Origin: Macrostomum lignano
Lineage: Eukaryota
DNA length: 34,526 nucleotides
Reading direction: 5' to 3'
NCBI GenBank assembly: GCA_002269645.1
Contig: NIVC01000998.1
Span: forward strand, 1 to 34,526
The position numbers were made by a program, and so were the translations under genes. Under the pieces are notes generated by a model. It was given only the letters and a program-made list of their open reading frames with translations. It was not told the DNA's origin and made no database searches. This document shows, piece by piece, positions 1 through 30,819 of this stretch (its first letter is position 1; every line of letters begins with the position of its first letter).

Positions 1-3000
1 TCACTTACAAACAGCTTGTCATTGTAGCCTTCAACACGAATCACTTACAAACAGCTTGTTATTGTAGCCTTAACACGAATCACTTACAAACAGCTTGTCA
101 TTGTAGCCTTCAACACGAATCACTTACAAACAGCTTGTCATTGTAGCCTCAACACGAATCACTTACAAACAGCTTGTCATTGTAGCCTTCAACACGAATC
201 ACTTACAAACAGCTTGTCATTGTAGCCTTCAACACGAATCACTTACAAACAGCTTGTCATTGTAGCCTTCAACACGAATCACTTACAAACAGCTTTGTCA
301 TTGTAGCCTTCAACACGAATCACTTACAAACAGCTTGTCATTGTAGCCTTCAACACGAATCACTTACAAACAGCTTGTCATTGTAGCCTTCAACACGAAT
401 CACTTACAAACAGCTTGTCATTGTAGCTTCAACACGAATCACTTACAAACAGCTTGTCATTGTAGCCTTCAACACGGAATCACTTACAAACAGCTTGTCA
501 TTGTAGCCTTCAACACGGATCACTTACAAACAGCTTGTCATTGTAGCCTTCAACACGAATCACTTACAAACAGCTTGTCATTGTAGCCTTCAACACGAAT
601 CACTTACAAACAGCTTGTCATTGTAGCCTTCAACACGGATCACTTACAAACAGCTTGTCATTGTAGCCTTCAACACGAATCACTTACAAACAGCTTGTCA
701 TTGTAGCCTTCAACACGAATCACTTACAAACAGCTTGTCATTGTAGCCTTCAACACGAATCACTTACAAACAGCTTGTCATTGTAGCCTCAACACGAATC
801 ACTTACAAACAGCTTGTCATTGTAGCCTTCAACACGAATCACTTACAAACAGCTTGTTATTGTAGCCTTCAACACGAATCACTTACAAAAGCTTGTCATT
901 GTAGCCCTCAACACGAATCACTTACAAACAGCTTGTTATTGTAGCTTGTCATTGTAGCCCTCAACACGAATCACTTACAAACAGCTTGTCATTGTAGCCT
1001 TCAACACGAATCACTTACAAACAGCTTGTTATTGTAGCCTTCAACACGGAATCACTTACAAACAGCTTGTCATTGTAGCCTTCAACACGAATCACTTACA
1101 AACAGCTTGTTATTGTAGCCTTCAACACGAATCACTTACAAACAGCTTGTTATTGTAGCCTTCAACACGAATCACTACAAACAGCTTGTCATTGTAGCCT
1201 TCAACACGGAATCACTTACAAACAGCTTGTCATTGTAGCCTTCAACACGAATCACTTACAAACAGCTTGTCATTGTAGCCTTCAACAACGAATCACTTAC
1301 AAACAGCTTGTCATTGTAGCCTTCAACACGAATCACTTACAAACAGCTTGTCATTGTAGCCTTCAACACGAATCACTTACAAACAGCTTGTCATTGTAGC
1401 CTTCAACAAAACACGATCACTTACAAACAGCTTGTCATTGTAGCCTTCAACACGAATCACTTACAAACAGCTTGTCATTGTAGCCTTCAACACGAATCAC
1501 TTACAAACAGCTTGTCATTGTAGCCCTCAACACGAATCACTTACAAACAGCTTGTCATTGTAGCCTTCAACACGAATCACTTACAAACAGCTTGTCATTG
1601 TAGCCTTCAACACGATCACTTACAAACAGCTTGTCATTGTAGCCTTCAACACGAATCACTTACAAACAGCTTGTCATTGTAGCCTTCAACACGAATCACT
1701 TACAAACAGCTTGTTATTGTAGCCTTCAACACGAATCACTTACAAACAGCTTGTCATTGTAGCCTTCAACACGAATCACTTACAAACAGCTTGTCATTGT
1801 AGCCTCAACACGAATCACTTACAAACAGCTTGTCATTGTAGCCTTCAACACGAATCACTTACAAACAGCTTGTTATTGTAGCCTTCAACACGAATCACTT
1901 ACAAACAGCTTGTCATTGTAGCCTCAACACGAATCACTTACAAACAGCTTGTCATTGTAGCCCTCAACACGAATCACTTACAAACAGCTTGTCATTGTAG
2001 CCTTCAACACGAATCACTTACAAACAGCTTGTCATTGTAGCCTTCAACACGAATCACTTACAAACAGCTTGTCATTGTAGCCTTCAACACGAATCACTTA
2101 CAAACAGCTTGTCATTGTAGCCTTCAACACGAATCACTTACAAACAGCTTGTTATTGTAGCCTTCAACACGAATCACTTACAAACAGCTTGTCATTGTAG
2201 CCTCAACACGAATCACTTACAAACAGCTTGTCATTGTAGCCCTTCAACACGAATCACTTACAAACAGCTTGTCATTGTAGCCTTCAACACGAATCACTTA
2301 CAAACAGCTTGTCATTGTAGCCTTCAACACGAATCACTTACAAACAGCTTGTCATTGTAGCCCTCAACACGAATCACTTACAAACAGCTTGTCATTGTAG
2401 CCTTCAACACGAATCACTTACAAACAGCTTGTCATTGTAGCCTTCAACACGAATCACTTACAAACAGCTTGTTATTGTAGCCTTCAACACGAATCACTTA
2501 CAAACAGCTTGTCATTGTAGCCTTCAACACGAATCACTTACAAAACAGCTTGTTATTGTAGCCTTCAACACGAATCACTTACAAACAGCTTGTCATTGTA
2601 GCCTTCAACACGAATCACTTACAAACAGCTTGTTATTGTAGCCTTCAACACGAATCACTTACAAACAGCTTGTTATTGTAGCCTTCAACACGAATCACTT
2701 ACAAACAGCTTGTTATTGTAGCCTTCAACACGAATCACTTACAAACAGCTTGTCATTGTAGCCTTCAACACGAATCACTTACAAACAGCTTGTCATTGTA
2801 GCCTTCAACACGAATCACTTACAAACAGCTTGTCATTGTAGCCTTCAACACGAATCACTTACAAACAGCTTGTCATTGTAGCCTTCAACACGAATCACTT
2901 ACAAACAGCTTGTCATTGTAGCCTTCAACACGAATCACTTACAAACAGCTTGTCATTGTAGCCCTCAACACGAATCACTTACAAACAGCTTGTCATTGTA

Positions 3001-3015
3001 GCCTTCAACTCGAAT
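1..3015 (-). repeat. 40-bp tandem satellite (~75 units, runs off the window edge); unit on minus strand = ATTCGTGTTGAAGGCTACAATGACAAGCTGTTT+GTAAGTG
   Basis: Direct 40-bp periodicity (tcacttacaaacagcttgtcattgtagccttcaacacgaa). The rightmost unit overlaps the nardilysin exon 2983-3052. Confidence 0.98.
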
Positions 3016-3052
3016 ACGAATAGAAAATGGCTCTACGTATAGAACTTCGTAC
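2983..3052 (-). CDS. NRDC: Nardilysin/M16A peptidase exon 8 in window: (W)YEVLYVEPFSIRIRVEGYNDKLF
   Basis: Acceptor ttatag|G, donor TTT|GTAAGT. Phase 2 matches the previous exon. Matches the IDE/NRDC motif V-x-G-[YF]-N-[DH]-K. Confidence 0.88.
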
Positions 3053-3149
3053 CTATAAATTTTTGTGATGAGTATTTTTTATGTAGATAAACGCAAAACC
3101 GACTGCTGCATAACAAGTCTCGTAGAAAGCTTGAAAATCAGTCACATAC

Positions 3150-3233
3150 CACAGATAGGCCTCGACGGCGGCGTACAACTCCTTGCTCAACTGAAAATCG
3201 AACATGTACAGCCACAGGTGCACCAGTGTTGAG
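3150..3233 (-). CDS. NRDC: Nardilysin exon 7: (N)STLVHLWLYMFDFQLSKELYAAVEAYL(W)
   Basis: tttcag| acceptor, TG|GTATGT donor, phases 2/2. Aligns to the M16A 'L..E.AY.A..A.L' helix. Confidence 0.85.
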
Positions 3234-3289
3234 CTGAAATGTACAGGTGCTCATTCTTGGATCGCACCACCTGGCACGGCTCCACATTC

Positions 3290-4570
3290 TCAAACCATGC
3301 CGTCAGCCGCCTACATTCTCAGACCATGCTGTCACCCTCCCACATTCTCAGATCATGCCGTCACCCGCCCACATTCTCAGACCATGCTGTCCCCCTCCCA
3401 CATTCTCAGACCATGCTGTCACCTTCCCACATTCTCAAACCATGCTGTCACCCTCCCACATTCTCAGACCATGCTGTCACCCTCCCACATTCTCAAACCA
3501 TGCTGTCACCCTCCCACATTCTCAGACCATGCCGTCACCCTCCCACATTCCCAGACCATGCCGTCACCCTCCCACATTCCCAGACCATGCCGTCACCCTC
3601 CCACATTCTCAGACCATGCCGTCACCCTCCCACATTCCCAGACCATGCCGTCACCCTCCCACATTCCCAGACCATGCCGTCACCCTCCCACATTCTCAGA
3701 CCATGCCGTCACCCTCCCACATTCTCAGACCATGCCGTCACCCTCCCACATTCCCTGACCATGCCGTCACCCTCCCACATTCTCAGACCATGCCGTCACC
3801 CTCCCACATTCCCAGACCATGCTGTCACCCTCCCACATTCTCAGACCATGCCGTCACCCTCCCACATTCTCAGACCATGACGTCACCCTCCCACATTCCC
3901 AGACCATGCCGTCACCCTCCCACATTCTCAGACCATGCCGTCACCCTCCCACATTCTCAGACCATGACGTCACCCTCCCACATTCCCAGACCATGCCGTC
4001 ACCCTCCCACATTCTCAGACCATGCCGTCACCCTCCCACATTCCCAGACCATGCTGTCACCCTCCCACATTCTCAGACCATGCTGTCACCCTCCCACATT
4101 CCCAGACCATGCTGTCACCCTCCCGCATTCCCAGACCATGCTGTCACCCTCCCACATTCCCAGACCATGCCGTCACCCTCCCACATTCCCAGACGAAGCC
4201 GTCACACTCCCACATTCTCAGACCATGCTGTCACCCTCCCACATTCCCAGACCATGCCGTCACCCTCCCAAATTCTCAGACCATGCTGTCACCCTCCCAC
4301 ATTCCCAGACGAAGCCGTCACCCTCCCACATTCTCAGACCATGCTGTCACCCTCCCACATTCCCAGACCATGCCGTCACCCTCCCAAATTCTCAGACCAT
4401 GCTGTCACCCTCCCACATTCCCAGACGAAGCCGTCACCCTCCCACATTCTCAGACCAAGCTGTCACCCTCCACATTCTCAGACCATGCCGTCACCCTCCC
4501 ACATTCTCAGACCATGCTGTCACCCGCCTACATTCTCAGACCATGCTGTTCTGTTACCCTCCCACATTTT
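3290..4570 (+). repeat. 29-bp minisatellite (ccctcccacattc[c/t]cagaccatgccgtca), ~44 units, intronic
   Basis: 29-bp period; this explains the 29-aa cycling translations in the ORF track. Confidence 0.95.
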
Positions 4571-4615
4571 CAGATCATACCGTCAATTTGATTACCAGGC
4601 AAAAATGCAACTTAC

Positions 4616-4667
4616 TTTTCTAGCGACTCACAAATAACAGGAGAGTCTAAGCTGACTCGAACGACGG
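4616..4667 (-). CDS. NRDC: Nardilysin exon 6: (A)VVRVSLDSPVICESLE(N)
   Basis: tttcacttcag| acceptor, AA|GTAAGT donor. Phase 1 in and phase 2 out fit both neighbours. Aligns with NRDC KAYIRFHLISPLIQ. Confidence 0.82.
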
Positions 4668-4765: not shown

Positions 4766-4856
4766 CTCTTGGCGTCTTGAACTTGCGGTCCTTATAATAG
4801 AACAGGGGCCCGAACCGGTCCACGGCTGGGTCGCCAACGAGAAGGCGAACTGGGTA
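4766..4856 (-). CDS. NRDC: Nardilysin exon 5: YPVRLLVGDPAVDRFGPLFYYKDRKFKTPR
   Basis: tgtcccgcag| acceptor, G|GTTCGC donor. Matches the M16A 'LW[YF]K.D..F..P[KR]' motif. Confidence 0.85.
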
Positions 4857-5039: not shown

Positions 5040-5440
5040 AGGCTGGATTCTCATTGAGATACCCGGATTCTAAGTGGAGATACCAGGATTTTTTAATGGA
5101 GATAGCTAGATTCTAAGTGGAGATAGCTGGATTCTAAGTGGAGATAGCTGGATTTTAAGTGGAGATAGCTGGATTCTAAGTGGAGATAGCTGGATTCTAA
5201 GTGGAGATAGCTGGATTCTAAGTGGAGATAGCTGGATTCTAAGTGGAGATAGCTGGATTCTAAGTGGAGATAGCTGGATTCTAAGTGGAGATAGCTGGAT
5301 TCTAAGTGGAGATAGCTGGATTCTAAGTGGAGATAGCTGGATTCTAAGTGGAGATACCAGGATTTTTAATGGATATACCTGGATTCTCAGTGGATATACC
5401 TGGATTCGAGGTGGATATACCTGGATTCGAGGTGAAATTA
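5040..5440 (+). repeat. 21-bp minisatellite (ggagatagctggattctaagt), ~18 units with degenerate edges, intronic
   Basis: Direct 21-bp periodicity. Confidence 0.93.
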
Positions 5441-5601: not shown

Positions 5602-5776
5602 CTCCGGCACGCATTCCAGTCCCATCTCTCTGTAGGCCTCGCCCGGCGACGGCACGTTAAACTGCTCGGACACGAACTGGTTGGGCAGCGGCAGGTGCAG
5701 CCGGCAGGCGGTCAGCATCTCAGTGTCCGGATTCGTCACGCAGAGCTCCCAGTCGGCCATTGTGGCCTCGCTGAGC
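5602..5776 (-). CDS. NRDC: Nardilysin exon 4: (R)LSEATMADWELC...LHLPLPNQFVSEQFNV...ECVPE
   Basis: CAG|G acceptor, GAG|GTGGGC donor; 175 bp fits phase 2 to phase 0. Matches the M16A 'L.LP..N.FI..DF' motif. Confidence 0.88.
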
Positions 5777-5936: not shown

Positions 5937-6268
5937 AACTATTAATAATCATAATAATAGTAGTAGTAATAATAATAACTGCATACACCTGCCCAATTAG
6001 GCCAGATATGCAACCGACAGTTCAGTCGCCGCTATTGCGCGGCGTATCTGAAGGCTGCGTACGGCTGTTCAGTCCAAGGACTGGGAGGTCGCCACACACC
6101 CTCAGTTACCCCAGCTAATGCTGGCACCCATTTTACAGCTGGGTGAACTGAAGCAATGCAGAGTTAAGTGTCTTGCTCAAGGACACAGATTGTTCCGAGT
6201 GGGTTGAGAATCGAACCCAAGACCTTACAGTCGTGAGACCGACGCTCTAACCACTAGGCTACAACCCT
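5937..6268 (-). mobile_element. tRNA-derived SINE, copy 1, with (ATT)n tail
   Basis: A-box TAGCCTAGTGG and B-box GGTTCGATTC on minus. Central CCTTGAGCAAGACACTTAAC...CTGTAAAATGGG. Homologous to copies at 9008 and 9885. Confidence 0.88.
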
Positions 6269-6348
6269 GATAGGTGTCTATGCATGTCCAAACTGACAGC
6301 TGAGTGGGTGACTGCTGTTCATCATTGAGTGAGTGACTACAGTTCATC

Positions 6349-7142: not shown

Positions 7143-7745
7143 TCGCTAGCCATAGCTCATAGGAATGCAAATTGGAGTGAAGCGCAAATTTAAGCAAGGC
7201 TTTTTTTACTCTTTTTCACATAGTACCCGATTTCCTATGGAAACGTATGCGCCAGCACAGCACTATTAGCCATTTCGTTGCGATTGGAGCCTGCTAAAAA
7301 TAGCAGGTTTTCCATAGGTAATTGCTAATATTCTCAGTGGGCAGAGCGGCTAAGATTGTACAACAATAGGCCTAGTATTTTTCTTCTTGTTTTATTCAGT
7401 AAAGTGTATCGTTTCTTTAAGGACGAGGTATCGGGGCTTGTGCATTTGAATTTGAAGGCTGGCCTATTTGCCTCTATAATACATTGAAACCGATAGGATG
7501 CTATGTTTTTATCAATACAAAACTAAAATTTCGTTGCCAATATGAGACGGCAGTAGCGCTGAAACTGAAATGTTGGAATTCATTATTTAGTATAGTGTTA
7601 CTAAGCTTTGCAAAGATTTTTTGTTTAGTTTATTTAGAGTTTCTGACCAATTTGACGGTTTTAAAAACCTATAAGGAAATGCTTTTTGGCTATAACTAAA
7701 AACTGGGAGGTAACTGCATGTAACTATGAAAGCATAAAGGAAAGG

Positions 7746-7746
7746 C

Positions 7747-7791
<45 letters not shown>

Positions 7792-7816
7792 CTAAGACAG
7801 ACAGACAGACAAACAC

Positions 7817-7898
<82 letters not shown>
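7746..7898. repeat. (GACA)n microsatellite, ~37 units, starting a few nt into the intron
   Basis: Direct; source of the spurious CLSV/DRQT ORF tails. Confidence 0.97.
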
Positions 7899-7902
7899 GC
7901 AC

Positions 7903-8934
7903 CTGTGCTCAGCGAATCGCACCGCCGGTCCATCGGTGACCTGATCGCAGATTGGTCCATACGAGCGCGAGGTCAGCAGAATGCAGCAGTTCCGAGGCCG
8001 CAGCCGTTTCCGATAGTCCTCAATTGCTTCGGGGTTAAATCGGCGCACGATCCGATCGCCCATCAGCCACATCTCCGGCTGCAGGCGGTGCATGTTGCAG
8101 CTGGCAAACTCAACGCTGTCGGCCGGCTCGTCCTCCTCCTGGAACCGGAAGGCCGTCCGCCAGATGCGCCTACGCTCGGCGTAGATTCTCGCCAGCTCGT
8201 TGAGCCGCTGGCCCATGAGGCCGATGTAGGCGTAAATGAGTCGAACGATTCTCTCCCAGGCCCGCAGTCCGGCCGGCGTGAGCCGGACGCCAACTTCGAA
8301 CAGCGAAGCGGCTGGATTGTCGCACAGGCCGCGGTTGCGCACTCCGGCCCAGAGCTCGGCGGCCAGGCCGGCCCGGCGCAGGCAGTCCAGCACGCTGCCC
8401 GGGCCCTCGTGGGCCAGACAGATGGCCAATAGCCGGTGCGGCTGATCGTGCAGACGGGCTGGGGGCCCCGGCCAGGCCAGGCGCAGCCGGTCCATGTCCT
8501 TAGCCGGCAGCAGTTTGTACACCCGGCCGTGAAATTTGTCGCAGTTGGCGAATGGCGGGGCCAGAGAGCGGGGCTCCGGCTGGCCAGGCTGCAGGCAGGC
8601 GAAGGACTCGCGCACAGTGGCCTCCAGTTCGTCCAGTCCGATGCGGCTCTGCACAGCCAGTCGCATGTTGCCGGCCGTGTAGTGCCGACGCCAATAGGCT
8701 TCGAGGCGTTGTCGAACGTCGATGCCCCGTTCGCGCGGCCGCTCCCACAGGGTGAACCGGTTGCCGGACTTGAAGCCGCCCATGGGGTGGCCGGTGCCGG
8801 CCAGCCAGTTGTGAAAGAAATTCATTTGCGAATCAACATTGGTGCAGGCCAACTCGAATTCGCTGTGCACCGCCTGAACCTCGCGCTCCAGACTGGACTC
8901 GAGCAGCAGCGGTTCGCCGAGCAGATGGGCGAAT
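7903..8934 (-). CDS. NRDC: Nardilysin exon 3 (1032 bp): (R)FAHLLGEP...EREVQAVHSEF...HPMGGFKSGN...RHYTAGNMRLAV...HEGPGS...FAEH(R)
   Basis: ttcaag|A acceptor, AG|GTGCGT donor, phases 2/2. Contains the third Zn-ligand Glu context (V.SE), the F..GN motif and HEG.GS of M16A. Confidence 0.93.
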
Positions 8935-9007
8935 CTTGAATAATAAGTTAAAAACCCTTCATTATTTGGCTACTCAATAAGGCTGTTTCGATGTACTCTC
9001 CTAGCCT

Positions 9008-9328
9008 AGGGTTGTAGCCTAGTGGTTAGAGTCGTAGAGTGTCGGACTCACGACTTGAAGGTCGGGGGTTCGATTCCCGATCCCACTGGAACAATTTGTG
9101 TCCTTGAGCAAGACACTTAACTCTGTATTGCTTCAGTTCACCCAGCTGTAAAATGGGTGCCAGCATTAGCTGGGGTAATTGAGGGTGTGTGTGGCGACCC
9201 CCCAGTCCTTGGACTGAACAGCCGTACGCAGCCTTCAGATGCGCGTAATAGCTGCGGCTGAGCTGTCGGTTGCACATCTGGCCCAATTGGGACAGGTAGT
9301 TCATTATTGCTTTTATTTAATTATTAAT
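9008..9328 (+). mobile_element. tRNA-derived SINE, copy 2
   Basis: A/B boxes, same body as copy 1, AT-rich tail. Confidence 0.88.
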
Positions 9329-9462: not shown

Positions 9463-9881
9463 CTATCCAAGCAATCGGGCAGGCTCTGCTGCCTGACGCT
9501 AAAATAAAACAGCGTCTGCTCGGCATCAGTCCAAGCGTTGCTGCTGCCGCCGCATTCCTGTACAAACGCGTCGAACCCGTTCTCGTCAGGATACTTGGCC
9601 GAGCCCATGAACACCATGTGCTCCAGGCAGTGGGCCAGGCCGGGCAAATCCGGATCGTCCTGGGCGTTGCCGCTGCCGACGCAAACAGCGGCGGCCGACA
9701 GCTTGGCAGTGCGGACCCGCTGGCTGCGCCTGGCCTCGGCCAGGCCGTCTCGATCGCCGCGTTCGCGATTGGCGACTGCCTCGACCTCGCTGTCCTGCGC
9801 GTCTTCGTCTGGGTTCGACTCTTCACCGGTTTCTTCTTGGTTCTGCTTTTGGGGATCAAGGGAGTTGGGATTTCTCAGGGG
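9463..9881 (-). CDS. NRDC: Nardilysin exon 2: acidic stretch + KLSAAAVCVGSG...PGLAHCLEHMVFMGS.KYP.EN...GG..NA.T
   Basis: Inverzincin HxxEH motif (HCLEH); tattatag| acceptor, AG|GTGAGT donor; 419 bp fits phase 0 to phase 2. Confidence 0.93.
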
Positions 9882-9884
9882 CTA

Positions 9885-10177
9885 TAATATAATGATTTAA
9901 TAATTGATTACACCTGCCCTAATATGCAGATGTGCAACCGACAGCTCCGCCGCAGCTATTGCGCGGCGCATCTGAAGGCTGCGTACGTCTGTTCAGTCCA
10001 AGGACTGGGTCGCCACACACAGCCTCAATTACCCCAGCTAATGCTGGCACCCATTTTACAGCTGGGTGAACTGAAGCAATGCAGAGTTAAATGTCTTGCT
10101 CAAGGACACAAATTGTTCCGAGTGGGTCGAGAATCGAACCCAAGACCGACGCTCTAACCACTAGGCTATACAACCCT
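9885..10177 (-). mobile_element. tRNA-derived SINE, copy 3 (short deletion in the tRNA head)
   Basis: Homologous to copy 1 along its whole length. Confidence 0.88.
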
Positions 10178-10210
10178 GCTAGGTGTCTATACATGTCCAA
10201 ACTGACAGCT

Positions 10211-10695
10211 GAGTGAGTGACTACAGTTCATCATTGAGTGAGTGACTGCTGTTCATCATTGAGTGAGTGACTGCTGTTCATCATTGAGTGAGTGACTGCT
10301 GTTCATCATTGAGTGAGTGACTGCTGTTCATCATTGAGTGAGTGACTGCTGTTCATAATTGAGTGAGTGACTACAGTTCATCATTGAGTGAGTGACTGCT
10401 GTTCATCATTGAGTGAGTGACTGCTGTTCATCATTGAGAGAGTGACTGCTGTTCATCATTGAGTGAGTGACTGCTGTTCATCATTGAGTGAGTGACTGCT
10501 GTTCATCATTGAGAGAGTGACTGCTGTTCATCATTGAGTGAGTGACTGCTGTTCATCATTGAGTGAGTGACTGCTGTTCATCATTGAGTGAGTGACTGCT
10601 GTTCATCATTGAGTGAGTGACTGCTGTTCATCATTGAGTGAGTGACTGCTGTTCATCATTGAGTGAGTGACTGCTGTTCATCATTGAGTGAGTGA
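10211..10695 (+). repeat. 25-bp minisatellite (gagtgagtgactgctgttcatcatt), ~19 units, intronic
   Basis: Direct periodicity. Confidence 0.96.
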
Positions 10696-10722
10696 CAATT
10701 TCCCTCCTTCACGCACAATTAC

Positions 10723-11044
10723 CTGATCATTGTAATCAGATGGTCCATCGTCTTCATTATCCAACGCATTGTCGGCATCCTCAGACGTTGTCACCTCAAT
10801 CCCGCTATTGCTCATACTTGAGTTGGCATTCTCACCGTCGCCATTTTGTTCGTTGCGTCGACGCCGACGTCGACGTCGGCCAGGATCTTCGTCGTAGTCC
10901 TCGTCGGCCGACAGGATGGCGCTAACTTCAACCATGGCGTCCAGCGGCTCGACTGTGGACTTGCGACGCTTAACAGTTGGCAAATTGGCATCGTCGGGCT
11001 CATGAATCAGCAGCACTAGGAGGCCGTTGTCAAGCAGGATGCGC
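10723..11044 (-). CDS. NRDC: Nardilysin first visible exon: (R)RILLDNGLLVLLIHEP + start of the acidic insertion; 5' boundary uncertain (could extend to ATG at 11097)
   Basis: Matches IDE/NRDC 'YR...L.NG...LLIS[DE]P'; donor CAG|GTAATT in phase 0. An acidic insertion before the SAAA motif points to nardilysin rather than IDE. Confidence 0.8.
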
Positions 11045-14520: not shown

Positions 14521-16337
14521 TGACTTAATGAGTATATATTAAAAGTACATAAGTTCTTGCTTGATTTTTAAAATCAGCCATGGAATTATTCTATTTGGAA
14601 AAATCATACTTGCAAATTGTGCAACTTTGAAATTTTACTCAGCTATATTTTTTGCATAATACTAGCTGGTACTATTAATTCTGCAGTAATTTAAATTTAT
14701 AGGTCTTAATGCTCTTTGTGCTTTGTGAACTTTGTGATCTTTGTGCCTATATGTAGCTACAAATTATGGTATTTAACAACTATCTTTGTGGGTCGTAACT
14801 CTGCCATTATTTAGTCCATCATAATGTAAAAGGAGGAGGGCAACTATATGTAGATACATTTACATGTATAATGTATAATCTTTATCTTTATATATGTAGT
14901 TGCATGTACAAGTATATATGTTACATATAACAAAGTTTTCAAAGTTTTTCATACAGAAAGTGGATGACAAAGTGTCCACATCCATAGTCAGGATCATGTC
15001 ATAGTATATGCCAGAATAAAAAGTAACCTAAAAAAATCTATGCCACTTCATACTGAAACGTACGCCAAGGTCCTAGGAACTTACGTCAGGTTTTCTAGGC
15101 TTTGCGACAATAAATGACCTTTTTTTGCGTGTTACACTTTTTAACAATAAAAATTTAACAAATGTGTGGTTTTCATTAAAAGTAAATTGGCTTACAGATA
15201 ATGCCAACAAAAATCAATTTCTAGTTTGTTTTTTTTACAAAATTAACATGATTAGTTTGCGTGGAATTTTAAATTTTTATAAATCACAAGTAGTTATGAA
15301 TTTTCATCTTACAAGTTTTACGGTTTTTATGATTTTATAATAAGATTCTAAGGTTATGGCGTTATGCTAACAATTGTTAATATTAACTTTGGCATGAAGG
15401 TTGGAGTTGGCATACGCTGCTTGGCGTATTTACGCCACGGGGTCATGCCAAAAGGTACGCCAAATATATTTTGCCTCATTTTTTATGCCAATTGTAAAAC
15501 AAAAAAAAAGTTAAATTTTCAATTGTACACCAGAAATTTCAGGCATAAAGTATATCATCCTGACTATGGGTCCATATTAGTAATATGGATGATGAAGTGG
15601 TAAGATGATGAAGTGTCCAACAATAAGAGTGGATGACAAAGTGTCCAGGAACTATATAGACATAGCATAGGTTTACTTTAAAGGTAAAAGAAAATATGAG
15701 CTTTTTTGAGCTTTAATTATACATCAAAATTATATAGATTATAGATATAATCTTTAAGGTAAAAGCCCATATAGCACTAAAACAACTATGAAATTTTCTG
15801 AGCCTTCAGATTTTTAAGTGTCTTAAGACCAGCTTATATAACTACTAGAAAAGCAAAAAGTATAACCTGTACTTTAATTTGATTGTCTTAAATTTTAAAT
15901 TAAATCAAAGCTAGTAAAATCCATGCCTATATTATAAGATATATGATAGCACAAATGGCACTGCTGTATTTATATATTATTTATGCAAACTTTTAATATA
16001 GCGACTTTGCTATTTCCAGTGTCACAACCAGAAAATTAATGAAAGGGCATATCCTAAGACAGAAGTGGGATAAAGACTGAAAGGGGCAGAGGGGCAAAAC
16101 TTGCATTTTGGCAAAATTTTACTTGGAACCCCTTGAAATTTTTTCTGGGTCTCCATCAAATGTGGGCGGAAACAATTTTTTTATCATTTACTCCAGACTT
16201 CGAGACTTGTCACTTGACTTGGGAAGGTTGCTAAACAGTAAATCAAGATCACCTCACCTGTATTTCTTCTTATCAGATTCACTGATGATAAACTCTCCTT
16301 GACGCAAAAAATCATAATTTTCTACTATTTGCATTAA

Positions 16338-16823
16338 AATCTTTAGCAGCTGGCAGATCCCAAAAAGATCGTCTATGCTAACGGCCTATACTGTGGGTTA
16401 AACTTTTTCTTCGAAAATTCGACGAAAAAAGATATATTCAAAATAGTTTAAAAAATACATGGAAGCCTAATTATAACAATAATTTTTACATTTTAATACG
16501 CTTAAACCTCATCAACAAAGTTTAGTCGTGCTTCTGGGTATATCTTCTGGACAAAATATATAAGTTTAGACGTATTTAATAATCTTTAGCAGCTGGCAGA
16601 TCCCAAAAAGATCGTCTATGCTAACGGCCTATACTGTGGGTTAAACTTTTTCTTCGAAAATTCGACGAAAAAAGATATATTCAAAATAGTTTAAAAAATA
16701 CATGGAAGCCTAATTATAACAATAATTTTTACATTTTAATACGCTTAAACCTCATCAACAAAGTTTAGTCGTGCTTCTGGGTATATCTTCTGGACAAAAT
16801 ATATAAGTTTAGACGTATTTAAT
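16338..16823. repeat. Apparently exact 243-bp tandem duplication
   Basis: 16338-16580 is repeated at 16581-16823. Confidence 0.92.
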
Positions 16824-17646
16824 AAGTATAGGGCCTAAGCAAAAAGTAAATTTGATTCCCCTGCCTCTGGATCCGAGCTCGTTCTCTAGCTGCCCGCCTT
16901 TAATCACTTTGAACAGTTTTAGCTAGGCCCATTGGTCGCGTAATTTGATGGCATTATTTGATGGCAGTGTGAACTGTGAACAAGCCTTTACTCCACCTTG
17001 TGTTATTGATCGTAGCCATATGCCTATGTATCAATATCAATATGATTATTCCTACGGTAATTCTACAGAAATTATTCCTACGGTACCGTGGGGATAAGCA
17101 CTGCCATATATAAATTATGGTCTATCTTCCAAATCTTCATCTGTTAGGCTAATGTATTTCTAAATAAATATTCCAGAACTTTTAATGAGATTTAGTTCTA
17201 TTTAATATATGGCCTACTTGACTTGACTTAGTAAAGTCAAAGTCAAAGTATAAATGTTTGCCTATTTATTAGTATTATTAGTATAGTAGGCCACCTAGGG
17301 TAGGCTGCTTATCAATGCTCATGTCTCATCATGTGCAAACCAATTAATTAATAGAATCATAGGGCCTTAGTTAGACCTTACTAGATCCTTAACTAGATCC
17401 TTAATTAGTTAGATCCTTAACTATGAATGATAGTTAGAGCAGAAATTTTGGAATAGGCCCTAATGTTGCATTATTTTATAACAGTATCCTTGGCAATCAA
17501 TGCACTTGCCATTGGCATTGGTTGTGTAGCACCCAGATGCCATTGGCATTGGTAGCCTATAGAACTCAGCCAGTTGGTCCTCTAGCCACTAGTTGGCAAA
17601 GGTGATAACCTCTTTGTTAGACTTAAAATGATACCTACAAAATGGC

Positions 17647-20005: not shown

Positions 20006-23000
20006 CACGGTTAGGCTGGGCACTGATATTGGGGAAAAAATTGCCACAAGATGGCACCTATGTACCATTAAACTACTGCCTTTCTGTAGTTCAGAAAGCC
20101 CACTCATTAAAATTCATGTGCCTATCTTTGTGTACAATCTGTGTACAATTGCTCTCATTAATTGCTCTCGTTAATAAGACAAGCAGAAATTTTTAGCAAG
20201 TGACAGACTCAATGTATACTTGTACAAAAAAGAGTACAAGATTACAAGAAGTTTATTTAGGTTAATGTTTGTGTAGTATTATTGCTTGTTTTACTTGTTA
20301 ACTAGCTTGTAAGTTAGTAAGTTAAATAATTTTACGATTTCTAACATTACAAATTGTTTACATTTAAATACTCGGAAACAGCATGGGTTTTATAGAAAAA
20401 TTTCGAAATAACTATATTCTTTTTGTGTAGCAAGTTCCTCAAATATTAACCAGAACTACATGCATTTCTGCAATAATATTGCAAGGTACGCTCGTATTAG
20501 CATATAAAGTAGCAAAAGTATGAAAGCTTTCTACAGTACAGGAGCTTGCAAAAATTTTAGTATTTTAAATTTATAGGGTCCTTTGAATACTACTTTACTG
20601 TAAGACTAACAACCACTGCCATTTCTTTTACCGGTAAAGCAGAAAACCGAGTTACCGGGATTAAATGTGGTGGCTGTTGTAAGCAACCATGGCGCGCAAA
20701 AGATTTTGGCCAAACTCAGCATGGTGCGCTGGCAGGCTGTACCGTGACCACGTTTTGGCAAAATCAGAGTGAACACTCTCCACTGCTTGCTCGCTGCAGC
20801 TGCCAAGCGCTTGCCCTGTCCGCCGGCAGAACTCTCCAACATGGCAAAAGACAACGTGAACTTTTGGGGTGACAGGCAAGCTTAAGCTCATGTAGGCCAG
20901 TCGAAAATTCTCAATTGCCTCTTCAAAGTCTGCCGCCAATTCGGTTCCAAAGGCACTGCTGACCAGCCGATCGAACGCCATCAGACACGCCCCGTACGGC
21001 TGTAATGGTGGAGGCAGATCAGCGTGAAGCTGCGGTGATTTGCGGAGCAGCTGGCGGCAGGCGTTTACTTCCATCATGCCACCTCTGTAATCAGCTCGAA
21101 TAATGCCATGCTGATGAGCCCACTCGAACGCGCGATTCGCACCCCAAGCTTGGTTGAGCTTGTCCAGCAGTCGGTTGCTGACTCCAAGGAGCAGGTGCAG
21201 CTCAGGTGGCGGCAGAAGCATCAAAACTTCTTTGTCATCATCGCCTGGTAGCAGTGGCATGTTGACACAGTTTTTAAAGTTCTTTGCCTTTGCACAAACT
21301 TGGCCAGCTGCTTGAAACTGCTGAGCAAACTGCCGAATTCTCCCAAGAGTTCTTGGCACACCATTTTCTGTAAGAGGAGCCAGAGCTTCGCAATAGGGGC
21401 ACGGATGTGTACAGGAATGAGGTTGCAGTCCGCAGATGATGTTTGCAACTTTCATATCTGCAGTGACTGGGATTTGAAGTTCGTTGACAGCGATCGCCTC
21501 GAGCAGAGCCTGAATATTTCCGTAAGTCTCAGGAACGTCGTTGACGATCGCAAGCAACAGGATCTTCTTGACACCCGTGTCACAGAATTTCCTGCTGTTG
21601 GCTCCTTGAGTTCCGATTTCGGGTTTTGCGTTAGAGCCAATTATCGAAACGCAAACTTTAAAAAATCCGCCGCCACCATCGAGACCCAGCAGACAGTGAA
21701 AATCATTGAAACTGCATTGCTGAGCAACATGTGCAATGAGTTTGACCGAGTCGTTGCAGACAACAGTCGGGCGGCAAATAGTGTCGGCTGTTGCGGCAGT
21801 CGAGGTCAGCTCCGAGAACTGGAGATTCTGGATGTCGAAGTAATCCTCTAATGCTCGATTTTGCTGTACCAAAATTTTCTTCAAGTTTGACTCGACTGCA
21901 CGAGATGAGCTCGCGCCAGCACGAAGCACTTGAGCAGCCTGTAGCACTTGATTGTTGCTCAGATTCAGAGTTGTTTTCAAGTGCATCATAGTGTCCGTCC
22001 TCGTTGGAGGAAAGCTCGCACTGCTGTTTTGAGCAACATGCACAGCAACTCGAATCGGATGGCCGCCTCGATGTCTGGCCAGAGTGATCGAATTCGAATC
22101 CGCCGTCGACCCACCCGTCTTTTCGGCAATGCAGTTGCTGGCCAGCATCTCCCTTGTCCTTGGGCTGACTGTTTGCTCGATGTTAGTCACCTTAGCTGTC
22201 GAGTTGCATTTGTGCTGTTTGCCACGCCCAACTGGAGAATGACAGTATGAGCAGGAAAGCACAGCCGTTGCTCCTTCAGCTGGCGCTGGGGATCTTTCGC
22301 GTGGTCGACCAGGTGGGGCTCGAGCAGGACCTGTTGTGTAAGGCGTCTTTGGATCGCTGCCTTTGTGGTGATTGCCACGAGCCATTTCGCACAGTTGGCA
22401 GTTGCAATCCAGTCTGCTTCTGGTGGCTGGAGGCAGACTCTTCATGTCGGCTATTATCTTCTCGTAATCTGGTCGCGGTGGCAGAGCACGAGGCGTCAGA
22501 CTTCTTAGTGACGATAAAACGCGCCTGCAGCCCTGGCAAACTCCTTCAGGTAGAAAGTGCCGCACTGCCTCGTAGTCCTGGAACAAGTCGGCTGCCACGG
22601 ATTCGAAATTAGAGCAAGAAGAAATCAGCGCAGAAGCTCGTCTCAAGCAGAGCAGGCACAAACTTTGCCTGTTCTCGTTATGAGTTTTTTTTTGTCGTTG
22701 GCATTGTAGACAGTACAAGCTATGCAAACAGCTCTTTCAGTTCAGGCACTCGCTTGTTTTAGATCAAATAGAACTAGATCAAACCTTTATAAGTAAATTG
22801 AGCAGTATGATAACCAAGTTAACACACCTGGCAGAAATATTACAAAGCAATTATAGATAAGATACTACTGTGTTATTACTATTGATAAATTCCTCTTTAT
22901 GACTGCAATTATAAGGCATAAGCTACCTGTGGTGCAGCGTTTTATTGCTCAAGCAGATATGGGGCAATATTTACTCCCAAAGTCCTTTGTGGTCTATTCA

Positions 23001-23212: not shown

Positions 23213-23933
23213 ATAGTCATTGGCAACTAGTATACCAACTATTGCCTACCTGAAGTGCTAAGTGCCACCTAAGGACTCAAGCTTAGGAGTGCTTTTTTTA
23301 ACCTTTCCAGCAATATAAAATCAAACCTAGATTATGATAACTTAAACCAAGTTATAATTTATGATAAAATAAACCAAGTTTCTTGTGCCAAGTTTATAGG
23401 CATCCAGTCTAATTTCTAATAGGATTAGACATATGAATTGCATACATGGTTCTGATAGTAATGGCAATGATAATAGCATTGACAAAAAATTACTAGCAGG
23501 GTGCACATGGATAACTTCTCTTCTGATCCAATTGGCAAGGCAAATATTATGTTTGCAAAGCTTGTAGCTTGTTATTTGCTTTAAAAACTATTTCAAGTTT
23601 TTTCAAGAAAAGCTTTCTATTTGAATTGCAATTACAGTATGATTTTGTCACTGAGAAGTTCTGGCATCGAAAGAAATAAATTGAAAAAATCACTGCATTT
23701 CATCGATAATATCTGTTATGGAATAATCATGATGCATCTTATTTGGCTTTCTTGATCTGATCAGCTTTGTATATTAGTAGAATGTCCCGCGACTTACAGT
23801 GTCTTGCTAAGATGTGTTCTGCATACTCTGTGTCTGCACCTATTAATCTTATTTCTTATTTCTTATTCCATATAAGATATCTAAGTTGGCAGTGGATAAA
23901 ATCAAAACCTTTTTGCATGCAAAAAGTCTAACA

Positions 23934-24167
23934 ATGCTTATCAAGGTGAAAACCCTGACTGGCAAGGAGATCGAAATTGACATCGAGCCAACGGACAAGG
24001 TCGAGCGCATCAAGGAGCGAGTCGAAGAGAAGGAGGGCATCCCGCCGCCCCAGCAGAGGCTGATCTTCTCCGGGAAGCAGATGAACGACACAATGACTGC
24101 GGAAGAGCTGAAAATCACTGGCGGCTCGGTGCTTCACCTGGTGTTGGCCCTGCGCGGCGGCTGCTAG
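23934..24167 (+). CDS. NEDD8: NEDD8 (Rub1) ubiquitin-like protein, intronless, 77-aa precursor ending LALRGG-C
   Basis: [38 protein letters not shown] is identical to canonical NEDD8; Ala72 present; ACAATG start context. Confidence 0.95.
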
Positions 24168-26839: not shown

Positions 26840-27965
26840 CGTAGATTCCCAGAGAATGTCCGCCACCCTCTCAGATTCCCAGAGGTTGTCCGCCACCCTC
26901 CCAGATTCCCAGAAGTTGCCCACTACCTCCCAGATTCCCAAAAGTTGCCCACTATCCTCCCAGATTCCCAGAAGTTGCCTACTATCCTCCCAGAAGTTGC
27001 CCACTATCCTCCCAGATTCCCAGAAGTTGCCTACTATCCTCCCAGATTCCCAGAAGTTGCCCACTATCCTCCCAGATTCCCAGAAGTTGCCTACTATCCT
27101 CCCAGATTCCCAGAAGTTGCCCACTATCCTCCCAGATTCCCAGAAGTTGTCCACTATCCTCCCAGATTCCCAGAAGTTGCCTACTATCCTCCCAGATTCC
27201 CAGAAGTTGCCCACTATCCTCCCAGATTCCCAGAAGTTGCCTACTATCCTTCCAGATTCCCAGAAGTTGCCCACTATCCTCCCAGATTCCCAGAAGTTGT
27301 CCACTATCCTCCCAGATTCCCAGAAGTTGTCCACTATCCTCCCAGATTCCCAGAGGTTTCCGCCACCCTTCCAAGATTTCATGAGGTTGTACGCCACCCT
27401 CAGATTCCCCGAGGTTGTCCGCCACCCTCACAGATTCCCAGAGGTTGTCCGGCCGCCACGCTCTCAGATTCCCAGAGGTTGTCCGCCACCCTCACAGATT
27501 CCCAGAGAATGTCCGCCACTCTCTCAGATTCCCAGAGGTTGTCCGCCACTCTCCCAGATTCCCAGAAGTTGCCCACTACCTCCCAGATTCCCAAAAGTTG
27601 CCCACTATCCTCCCAGATTCCCAGAAGTTGCCTACTATCCTCCCAGAAGTTGCCCACTATCCTCCCAGATTCCCAGAAGTTGCCTACTATCCTCCCAGAT
27701 TCCCAGAAGTTGCCCACTATCCTCCCAGATTCCCAGAGGTTGTCCGGCCGCCACGCTCTCAGATTCCCAAAGGTTGTCCGCCACCCTCACAGATTCCCGG
27801 AGGTTGTCCGCCACCCTCACAGATTCCCAGAGGTTGTCTGCCACCCTTTCAGATTCCCAGAGGTTATCCGCCATCCTCTCAGATTCCATGAGGTTGTCCG
27901 CCACCCAGATTACAAGAGGTTGTCCTGTCCGGCCTCCTCTCAGATTTCCAGAGGCTGCCCACCAC
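26840..27965 (+). repeat. Composite 30-bp minisatellite (cagattcccagaagttgcccactatcctcc and cagattcccagaggttgtccgccaccct[c/t] variants)
   Basis: 30-bp periodicity with blocks of variant units. Confidence 0.95.
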
Positions 27966-30819
27966 CCTCCCCATGTCTTACCCCGGTTAAAGTTACTGAA
28001 CGAGCTAGCAACAGTTTTATATCTTTACCTTTACTCTGCCAAGTTCCTTTAGAAAACCTGTCAATATGCGCCCGCACGGTCTGCCCGGATCTGCAAAGCA
28101 TCAAATAGGTTAAAGCATTTTCAGCTCCAATTTCATTAGCCTTCTTCAAGTCCGCGTTTACGAGCTACGTGTATAGATTCGCATCGCATGAGTGTCGTAA
28201 TTAGCTTGAAGAACTGTTATGTTAATAGGTAATCTTTGAAATACTCGTAAATTGCATTGATTTTATTCTAAGTCACTGCATGGTCAAAATCAAAATCAGA
28301 ATTTTAAGCTGTTCATCAAGCTAGCAGTGTAAAAATGATTTCAAAACTGTGCAGCGCTTCTGAAACAAGCCGTGCACCAAATATTTGGTGCACTGAACTT
28401 ACCAGCCAAGATGTTGCTTTAGATGCTATCTTTGTCGACTTCATTAATCACGAATTCCTCATACTCTGTGGTGTTAGCTGTAATGAATCCGCTGCAAGAG
28501 TAAGAAAATTAAGTCTGGGCGTTTTGTTGGTGATTGTCAGAGTGCAGTGGTAGACATGCAGCGAATTGAAGCTTGGAAGCTGCGGCTGAATGTGTGGTAG
28601 GCCATGTATGCATTGATCTGTGTATCCTATACACCCGAGTTTATTAATCCCGCACATGCACTCAACAGCATGTTAAAGTTCCCACACCGAAAACAGGTGG
28701 TCAGCAAGTGGCAGCTCTAAACCAACTCAAGCCACCACAATTCTCTAGCCAAACTGCATCACCCACAGTTTAGACGCGAACCCCAGGCTTTGCGTCACTT
28801 GGGACTAAAATCTACAGGTTGCTCATATGGCCAGAACATAAAATCCAAGTTAGTTCGTGCTCATTGATATTATAAAATCTGAAGCTTTTTAGTCATTCAG
28901 ATTTCTATTTTTTTAATATTCATAAGTGAAACCTGATCCCTTTGGAGAATTTCCTCCGCAATGGTTCTAATGAATCCCCAACACCCGTAGGTGTGCCCAG
29001 TCCCGCAAACACGAAGTATGTAGCAACACAAGCGTCCGATGTTCCAGCTGTGGCCAGGCACCTGCAGCACCTGCAGCAGGCCAATAGCTTTGTTGTTATT
29101 TCATTATCTCCTCTAACCTCCCGCCCCTTATACAATGCGCTGGCGTTAAGGAGCTGAGAGAGTTGGCGAAATAGAACAACACGAAGAGGTTTTTCAAAGA
29201 AATTGGACCCCTCGAAAGTAGGCCCGATGAATATTTAGTCCGACAGGCTTCAACCTGCAGCCGCGCTCAGCGTCAGCCTCATCACCTGAACCCCATGATT
29301 ATTTTATCTGCGTGCCGCATCATCTAAGCGAGGTGAGGGGGGAAGCTGCGAGGCCGGAGACCTGAGGAATCCCTTGGCAGAAATTGGACGAAGGTTTGGC
29401 GCAGCCAATTCGAGTGTAGACATTTTGACCGGGAAGGAGGGGAGCCCTGCCTGAATGTAAGGCGTGGGATTCTTCGCTTGGCTTTTTTCACCAAGAGGCG
29501 CCCGACTTGTTCCTCCACTTTCGCGTTTCACGATTTCCAGAGTCCGATATCAGACGCGGGAAGCTGAAGGGGTCAAGAGATGAAGCCGCACCTCGTATCG
29601 AGCTGAGATGTTGCGCTGGCTGCTGCACCTCCTGGAACATGAGTGTTGACAAGACGCGTCATGTTGCGCTGAATCTCCAACTGCCTTCACCCTAAACCCG
29701 CCAGTTCTCCCACTTTCTTCTTCTGTTTTGGGTCCGTCCGCGTGAATTTCCATTCAAATACTTCGGATTCTGGGGCTTGCTTCGCAATGTATAAATATTG
29801 CACCGGCCGTGTTGTTGGGTTAAATTTGCTCGCGCATCAATACCTGTAGCTCTGCACAATCTGGCCTCTCTGTTCAATCCATTCAGCAGTGAGGATGGAT
29901 TGTTGAAAATTTCAAAACAAAACCATCATGTACGCCTTCCTATATACTAAAAATGAGTTGTCTGTATGTGTGTAAATAAATAAATAAAATAAATACTTTT
30001 ATTTGACTTGATACTTATTGCACCTTAAATGTAATTTGTTTCTCCTCAATTCGGTAGCTGCATACACTTCTTGTGGTACTACACGTCCGAAGGAGAGCTT
30101 GTATGGCGTGGACTAGCGTGCTAAATTTCACAGTTGGTTCTGGACTTATCCAACTTTCGACCTAGTGATACTGCGTCTTCACAAGCGTACTTGACTCCGG
30201 AGCTGTTTTCAACTTCTTGCATCCGACATCGTTCATTCAGTTTCAGTTTAGGCAGAGCCTTATCGGCGCCATCAAAAATTTTTTGACGGCCAAATGCAGA
30301 GCTGCAGCTTTGAATTAGCTTCGTCGGCTTGATTGGCATCTAGATTTCTTGGAAATCGAAATTTCCGAAGAAACCTCGACTAACCCGGGAGCGGAATCTG
30401 TTGCTGTTGCCGGGAACCAGCGGGGGGTCGGGGTGGACCGCCTGGAGAACTATGTTTAGCTCCCGTGTGCGCCCAGCAACCAACTCGGCTTTGATCAAAA
30501 GACGGAATATAAAAGCAACAGAGATTTGGTTAAGAAATGAATCAAGAGACCGTGAAATCGAAAGTATAGAAATTTCATTCCGTTTAGCTCAGCTACCAAA
30601 TTCCAGATCTTCTTTGTTGCATTGGTTCAGTTGGATTTATGCATTTGACTGTTGATAAACACCGGATTTTGCCTCACTGAGCTACAACCAATTTGCAACG
30701 GTGCCTCGTCGTCCCCTAGGGGAAGGGGGGCAAAAGCAGGGTTGGGAAGAGAAGACAAAGTCGGTTGTTTTCTGGCCTAGCATCTCCTTGTTGAATTGTG
30801 TTTTACTGCATGAGGGCCC

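Follow-up and report, generated by a model that had tools for sequence, protein, structure and literature searches.

Which splice donor is used when a gene carries many near-identical ones in tandem, and how such a series comes to be built, is the question raised by contig NIVC01000998.1 of the flatworm Macrostomum lignano (assembly GCA_002269645.1, Mlig_3_7), the entire 34,526 nucleotides of which were analysed and are here called the window. Its terminal 3 kb are occupied by a 40-bp minisatellite whose unit joins the end of an exon of a nardilysin-like M16 peptidase gene, read on the minus strand, to the 5' splice site that follows it. The array is a new, unusually large example of an already known array type, in a repeat-rich genome at a contig end. 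Should the gene go on beyond the array, the locus would offer a natural experiment in which 74 donors, near-identical in sequence and exonic context, stand before one acceptor, and because M. lignano transgenesis is possible (PMC5730564), the rule that the most upstream donor wins could be tested in a flatworm with many short introns.

Structure of the array and census of its donors

The array spans window positions 1–3015 in minus-strand reading and was resolved by Tandem Repeats Finder (TRF) into 23.7 and 51.7 copies of a 40-bp period (about 75.4 units) with 97% matches and 1% indels, an extent that the sequence itself and a census of units also gave. On the minus strand the exon sequence ...ATTCGAGTTGAAGGCTACAATGACAAGCTGTTT is followed by GTAAGTG and then by ATTCGTGTTGAAGGCTACAATGACAAGCTGTTTGTAAGTG over and over, unbroken to window position 1, each unit consisting of the last 33 nt of exon 9 (3015–2983) and GTAAGTG, as a first-pass annotation of this DNA had described. 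With a slash at each junction, the minus strand of window 1–3060 reads ...aaaaatttatag/GTACGAAGTTCTATACGTAGAGCCATTTTCTATTCGTATTCGAGTTGAAGGCTACAATGACAAGCTGTTT/GTAAGTG, that is, acceptor, exon 9 and donor. The same annotation had announced a 3-kb array with about 74 donors; the array is real and GTAAGT occurs 74 times, but the repeat starts at 3015 rather than at 3052, and both the unit count and the array length are lower bounds because the array reaches the contig end. An alternative TRF description has a 120-bp period in 25.0 copies (score 5576); a higher-order repeat was rejected, the 120-bp period scoring no better than the 40-bp one.

The 74 occurrences of GTAAGT run on the minus strand from 2982 to 8 and comprise the authentic 5' splice site (TTT/GTAAGTG, phase 0, 2976–2982), placed by sequence, census, protein reconstruction and the intron position of a paralogue, and 73 copies at steps of about 40 nt (8–2942), together with one degenerate GTAGTG. 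The intervals between donors measure 40 nt in 55 cases, 39 nt in nine, 41 nt in six, and 44, 53 and 80 nt once each, the last containing the degenerate site. Over positions −20 to +8, 57 of the 73 downstream donors match the authentic site exactly, and 40 differ from it by one base over −33 to +7; the consensus unit, present exactly in 40 units, departs from the exon only at −29 (A/T), with CGA in the exon and CGT in the units. Recurrent variants are scattered along the array, namely AATAAC for AATGAC (at least 9 units), GAGGG (at least 4) and GAGGC (5), and resemble those of real minisatellites.

Every unit carries stops in all three frames (GTA AGT GAT TCG TGT TGA; G TAA; GT AAG TGA), which can be read directly from it, as had been claimed. 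Unspliced read-through of the first donor reaches TGA after 15 nt of intron (the TGA lying 18 nt into the unit), and this stop, at 2965–2967 on the minus strand, is the annotated end of the deposited coding sequence, as the protein C-terminus and the gene range of the record both place it. The exon end before the donor at 2982 reads ...AAGCTGTTT, and a transcript spliced from the donors at +40n would hold GTAAGTGATTCG... ahead of its junction; the predicted product of later-donor use, ending ...KLFVSDSC and a stop, is exactly how the deposited protein ends. Neither AATAAA nor ATTAAA, and no pyrimidine-rich acceptor-like site, occurs anywhere in the array, which therefore offers donors only; a role as 3' end or alternative terminal exon was ruled out by the absent polyadenylation hexamer, and pseudo-exons inside the array by the absent acceptor. 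An Rfam scan of the window gave no family match, and a 41-nt string across the unit junction found no match in a metagenome scan.

The host gene and its truncated models

The deposited protein PAA73685.1 (P0001, BOX15_Mlig012474g1, 766 aa) was rebuilt exactly by a spliced aligner from nine minus-strand exons, with all introns GT-AG: exon 1 at 16334–16258, exon 2 at 11044–10723, exon 3 at 9842–9463, exon 4 at 8934–7903, exon 5 at 5776–5602, exon 6 at 4856–4766, exon 7 at 4667–4616, exon 8 at 3233–3150 and exon 9 at 3052–2983. Exon 9 (70 nt, ending ...YEVLYVEPFSIRIRVEGYNDKLF) is preceded by the array-free intron 8 (97 nt, 3149–3053), whose acceptor was given above; its existence, asserted by the first-pass annotation, follows from this exact rebuild and from a homologous 70-nt exon in the paralogue. 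In a protein search, a 460-aa open frame at 7590–8969 matched hypothetical protein BOX15_Mlig012474g1; the same search returned low-complexity matches from a translated CAGA repeat, the real relatives being P0001 and P0002 only.

Pfam domains in the host protein are Peptidase_M16 (PF00675, E=1.6e-29), Peptidase_M16_C and, with a match that stops at profile position 219 of 284, Peptidase_M16_M. The HxxEH zinc motif is intact as HCLEH, and an Asp/Glu-rich acidic insert lies at residues ~70–160; an acidic insertion in the N-terminal domain is a nardilysin feature, and 'Nardilysin' is the UniProt name of both the ML2-assembly copy of the gene and the paralogue. The exon 9 peptide aligns with human IDE up to VKGYNDK, and the motif V-x-G-Y-N-D-K, held by the earlier reading to be conserved, is conserved in nardilysin as well. 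This alignment ends at residue 637 of the 1019-residue IDE chain, so that ~380 residues are missing from the host protein. The full four-domain architecture (~1000–1150 aa) was not found on the contig, which holds 761 genuine residues against the 1121 aa of the paralogue, and the truncation could stem from either the gene or the assembly. The C-terminal domain of IDE-type enzymes makes up half of the catalytic chamber, and a truncated product would be without part of M16_M and the whole C-terminal domain.

Because the contig ends inside the array, the ~380 C-terminal residues and the acceptor are absent from it, and since it carries no further exon, the open frame continues into the first array unit. 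PAA73685.1 accordingly ends ...GYNDKLFVSDSC, its last five residues, VSDSC, being translated intron and array; this terminus is regarded as an artefact of the contig ending within the array, and it carries a lesson for annotation, a false C-terminus having been created by reading into a repeat at a contig end. The Mlig_3_7 annotation came from genome-guided transcript assembly (PMC5730564). In the ML2 assembly, the UniProt models A0A1I8JHW5 and A0A1I8GRL9 both stop at ...GYNDKL, that is, in exon 9, the former being a 1417-aa model fused to upstream open reading frames (ORFs) from window 30–34 kb; of these two ML2 models, also numbered P0121 and P0122, P0121 follows the window collinearly between ~33.6 kb and 2986, stopping 3 nt short of the exon end, and P0122 differs from P0001 at 3 of 760 residues. 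PAA73685.1, A0A1I8JHW5 and A0A1I8GRL9 are all 3'-truncated. An exact look-up of P0001 found this contig only, the identical read-through protein occurring in no other assembly or transcript contig; word-indexed protein searches with the C-terminal 271 aa of the gene and the C-terminal 419 aa of the paralogue gave no match, and missed the source proteins themselves too. No papers were found in the literature under the gene identifier Mlig012474. A 243-bp tandem duplication (2.0 copies, 99% identical) was observed at window 16334–16825; it adjoins the annotated start codon at 16334, which places it in the 5' untranslated region or promoter region of the peptidase gene.

Origin of the array from the exon 9/intron 9 junction

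An exhaustive HMMER search found a 1121-aa M. lignano nardilysin, BOX15_Mlig032179g1 (PAA90416.1, P0123), which shares 48% identity with P0001 as far as ...EGFNDKLFV. Its locus (L002, NIVC01000110.1:186907-212044) was mapped to 16 GT-AG exons, of which exons 7–10 measure 91, 52, 84 and 70 nt and equal exons 6–9 of the window gene. Paralogue exon 10 ends TTATTT/gtaagg, with a phase-0 intron after ...NDKLF as in the host gene, and this intron is 103 bp long and free of tandem repeats, the next exon encoding VLYSTILSKLEQF... Both paralogues thus inherited this phase-0 intron from their ancestor, and the array was acquired later, in the present copy. The motif encoded by the 33 exonic nucleotides of the unit is conserved between human IDE and the paralogue, and the copying therefore ran from the exon and its junction into the array. 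A dispersed satellite family only resembling the exon was ruled out, the 40-mer unit being absent elsewhere in the window and in L002 and its exonic part encoding the conserved motif. On this comparison of sequences, the array arose from the genuine exon 9/intron 9 junction. The proposal that a satellite had here grown out of an exon–intron boundary is thereby upheld, the paralogue having the same intron position and no array; the novelty that it implied was overstated, as several human examples are known from the 1990s on.

Intronic minisatellites in the two paralogues

The array does not stand alone in these genes. TRF arrays account for 38% of the intron bases of the host gene and 62% of those of the paralogue; in both, introns longer than ~300 bp consist mostly of unrelated minisatellites, a single array taking up the greater part of most of the longer ones, and introns of ~100 bp contain no arrays. 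As arrays fill the long introns and are lacking from those of ~100 bp, intron length is set mainly by array expansion in these genes. In the host gene, TRF detected a 29-bp minisatellite at 3282–4585, filling 94% of intron 7, and, in other introns, a 21-bp minisatellite at 5042–5428, a CAGA repeat at 7746–7898 and a 25-bp minisatellite at 10210–10696. Arrays in the paralogue lie within L002 8270–21898, where intron 9 holds a 20-bp unit in 210 copies (4.2 kb, 90% of the intron).

Ordinary intronic minisatellites of M. lignano resemble the studied array in that they have units of 16–41 bp, form arrays of 0.2–4.2 kb, occupy introns of this gene family, and in many cases begin within tens of nucleotides of the donor. 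First arrays start at +1, +4, +7, +12, +26, +27, +30, +40, +41, +73, +82, +173, +248 and +2852 from the donor, and the studied array at −33, which is the tail of a continuous distribution of array starts. Of the 14 array-bearing introns examined, only this one has its first array starting upstream of the donor, and because of that upstream start the exon end and its GT were copied, unlike in the ordinary arrays. A 41-bp array of 5.2 copies in the paralogue (L002 10410–10620) begins at the second base of intron 5 (GAG/gTGGGTCACTGG...); its later copies read GAT/TGGGTC or GAT/TAGGTC, without GT, the donor being adjoined and not reiterated. Simple and tandem repeats account for 15% of the M. lignano genome and have been blamed for assembly difficulties (PMC5730564). 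Where arrays form so commonly, it is to be expected that one will, rarely, straddle a donor.

An interspersed repeat was also observed in introns 2–4 of the host gene, in three copies 90–96% alike at 6003–6348 (+), 9035–9320 (inverted) and 9927–10257 (+); it contains a tRNA-like segment (GAATCGAACCC...CTCTAACCACTAGGCTA) and is probably a short interspersed nuclear element (SINE). The 25-bp minisatellite at 10210–10696 is an expanded tail of this SINE-like repeat, and the same 25-mer occurs 1.9 times at 6301–6348.

Explanations of the locus

In the explanation that we favour, a 40-bp segment across the exon 9/intron 9 boundary was duplicated in tandem as the founding event, and the array would have grown to at least 75 units through slippage or unequal exchange, as one more product of the heavy intronic minisatellite expansion in M. 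lignano. The founding duplication happened to take in the donor and 33 exonic bases, the sole difference from the neighbouring arrays. The gene would continue past the contig, and the first donor would be spliced, being the only one that lies 70 nt downstream of an acceptor and the one transcribed first; the copies downstream would stay silent, or else some leakage would occur from the second or third site. The array would then be neutral or slightly costly baggage with no evolved function, perhaps tolerated given the full-length paralogue and the duplicated chromosomes. That the gene continues is proposed because Peptidase_M16_M is cut mid-domain (219/284), which suggests that downstream exons exist beyond the cut, and use of the first donor is proposed from F7 intron 7, where the most upstream of identical donors is favoured. 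Taken as a whole, a neutral by-product with the first donor in use and the gene running on beyond the contig is judged reasonably probable.

Several points weigh against this explanation. The three gene models from two assemblies all end at exon 9, as would also be expected of a truncated copy of the gene. Short introns are numerous in M. lignano, and if its splice sites are paired across introns, the closest donor to the acceptor might be preferred, in contrast to mammals. All six bases of GTAAGT agree with the donor consensus, and in F7 only perfect-consensus copies could draw splicing from the first site (PMC1557585); the ABCA7 array, in addition, shows that length-dependent effects on splicing are possible (PMC5954066).

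In one alternative the array measurably lowers or tunes expression, some transcripts using a downstream donor, retaining 40-nt units and meeting TGA, with nonsense-mediated decay (NMD) or a truncated protein as the result, in a copy-number-dependent manner. It is consistent with GTAAGT in all 73 copies, 57 of them equal to the authentic site over −20 to +8, and with stops in all frames of each unit; human IFI6 and CBS also use their two most proximal copies, and ABCA7 intron 18 has a one-unit-retention isoform with a premature stop, array length correlating with splicing changes. However, F7, LMNB2 and PDGF use the first donor only, leakage to a second or third site would be a cost and not a designed regulator, and the paralogue works without an array, and this alternative is considered unlikely.

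A second alternative, of lower probability again, sees in the locus a duplicate that is truncated or in decay, the gene ending at the array with no exons beyond it and hence with no decoy-donor problem. The contig ends within the array; the Mlig_3_7 model and the two ML2 models (A0A1I8JHW5, A0A1I8GRL9) all end at exon 9; no C-terminal fragment was recovered, in searches that also missed the source proteins of their own queries and so carry no weight for or against; a full-length paralogue exists; and the sequenced DV1 line has duplicated chromosomes, with 180 Mb of redundant blocks (PMC5730564). On the other side, nine intact exons with canonical splice sites keep the frame open at only 48% identity to the paralogue, so that this copy stayed coding for a long time, and the HCLEH motif is intact. 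Assemblies, moreover, often break at long arrays, and this accounts equally well for the shared truncation.

A stronger form of the tuning idea treats the array as a working regulator, in which a copy-number-dependent share of transcripts would be spliced downstream and removed by NMD, array length setting nardilysin dosage; we regard this as quite improbable. The first-pass annotation had proposed a U1 snRNP sink, copy-number-dependent NMD and a useful truncated peptidase; these are unsupported by the sequence, and F7, the best-studied precedent, makes a function unlikely, NMD tuning of the gene being possible. A 74-site U1 'sink' in one pre-mRNA would be negligible against the cellular abundance of U1.

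Weakest is the explanation that the array, or most of its length, was made by the assembler from noisy long reads, which we consider highly improbable: the array does lie at the very end of the contig, and 18 of its 73 intervals are not 40 nt, mostly through single-base indels, a contrast with the 0% indels of the internal 29-, 25- and 21-bp arrays that suggests poorly polished sequence, but its recurrent substitution variants (AATAAC, GAGGG, GAGGC) are interspersed as in real minisatellites, the models of the second assembly stop at the same exon, and arrays of 1–4 kb are often found in the interior of contigs from this genome.

Other features of the window

Outside the peptidase gene, an uninterrupted ORF of 688 aa was observed at window 20661–22727 (−), locally GC-richer (~0.50) and with no Pfam match, which might derive from a mobile element. 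Upstream of the peptidase gene, at window 23925–24167 (+), lies an 80-aa single-exon gene of the ubiquitin family (Pfam ubiquitin, E=2.7e-26). A 30-bp minisatellite at window 26843–27971, likewise outside the peptidase gene, has ~36 copies with 79–86% matches and 5–8% indels and yields long spurious ORFs on both strands.

Comparison with known donor-reiterating minisatellites

Several human minisatellites that begin at or across a splice donor have been described from the 1990s on, in F7, IFI6, CBS, LMNB2 and PDGF (PMC1557585) and in ABCA7 (PMC5954066). In its one assembled copy, the M. lignano array shows three features of this class, namely a head-to-tail unit of 10–100 bp, the real junction in the first unit, and reiteration of the donor.

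In F7 intron 7, a 37-bp unit occurs in 5–9 copies and only the most upstream donor is used (Borensztajn et al. 2006, PMC1557585); in 50 constructs the pseudo-sites were functional yet never competed with the most upstream site, and copies competed only when mutated to the perfect consensus, and then partly (PMC1557585). The two arrays are alike in that the first monomer spans the exon–intron boundary, identical pseudo-donors follow the authentic donor, most of them would yield a premature stop, and each provides a natural model for 5' splice site choice. They differ in that F7 has 4 exonic bp per unit, 5–9 units and a weak donor (UGG/gugggu), whereas M. lignano has 33 nt, at least 75 units and GTAAGT, and in that splicing of F7 was measured, whereas the M. 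lignano array is known here from sequence alone.

The other human arrays of this kind vary in donor use. In CBS intron 13 (15–20 repeats), the authentic site and two pseudo-sites are used, and in IFI6 (6-16) intron 2 the authentic donor and the two most proximal copies are used, constitutively, as in CBS; LMNB2 (100 bp, 10–15 copies) and PDGF intron 4 (81 bp, 16–18 copies) use the authentic donor only (PMC1557585). All four resemble the M. lignano array in having a first monomer that spans the exon–intron boundary and a donor reiterated 10–25 times, and differ from it in having fewer copies. The IFI6 unit, of 12 nt, keeps the reading frame, whereas the 40-nt unit of M. lignano does not.

In ABCA7 intron 18 the unit is 25 bp long, its first two bases being supplied by the exon 18 donor, with alleles of ~12 to ~427 units (0.3–10.7 kb); an isoform retaining one unit has a frameshift and a premature stop, and altered splicing has been associated with array length (PMC5954066). 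This array likewise starts at the donor, with each unit beginning GT, and its allele sizes bracket the M. lignano array; it differs in that its unit has no exonic sequence and in that its effect is documented in human tissue.

The M. lignano locus illustrates how rampant intronic minisatellite growth now and then captures a splice junction, and it reveals no new mechanism. It may be the largest natural array of donors with identical exonic context, no larger one having been found in the literature searched. Its anatomy, its scale and the idea of a length-dependent route to a premature stop and NMD have all been documented before; it stands apart in that 33 of the 40 nucleotides of the unit are exonic, in the strength of the GTAAGT donor, in the copy number in one reference sequence, and in the organism.

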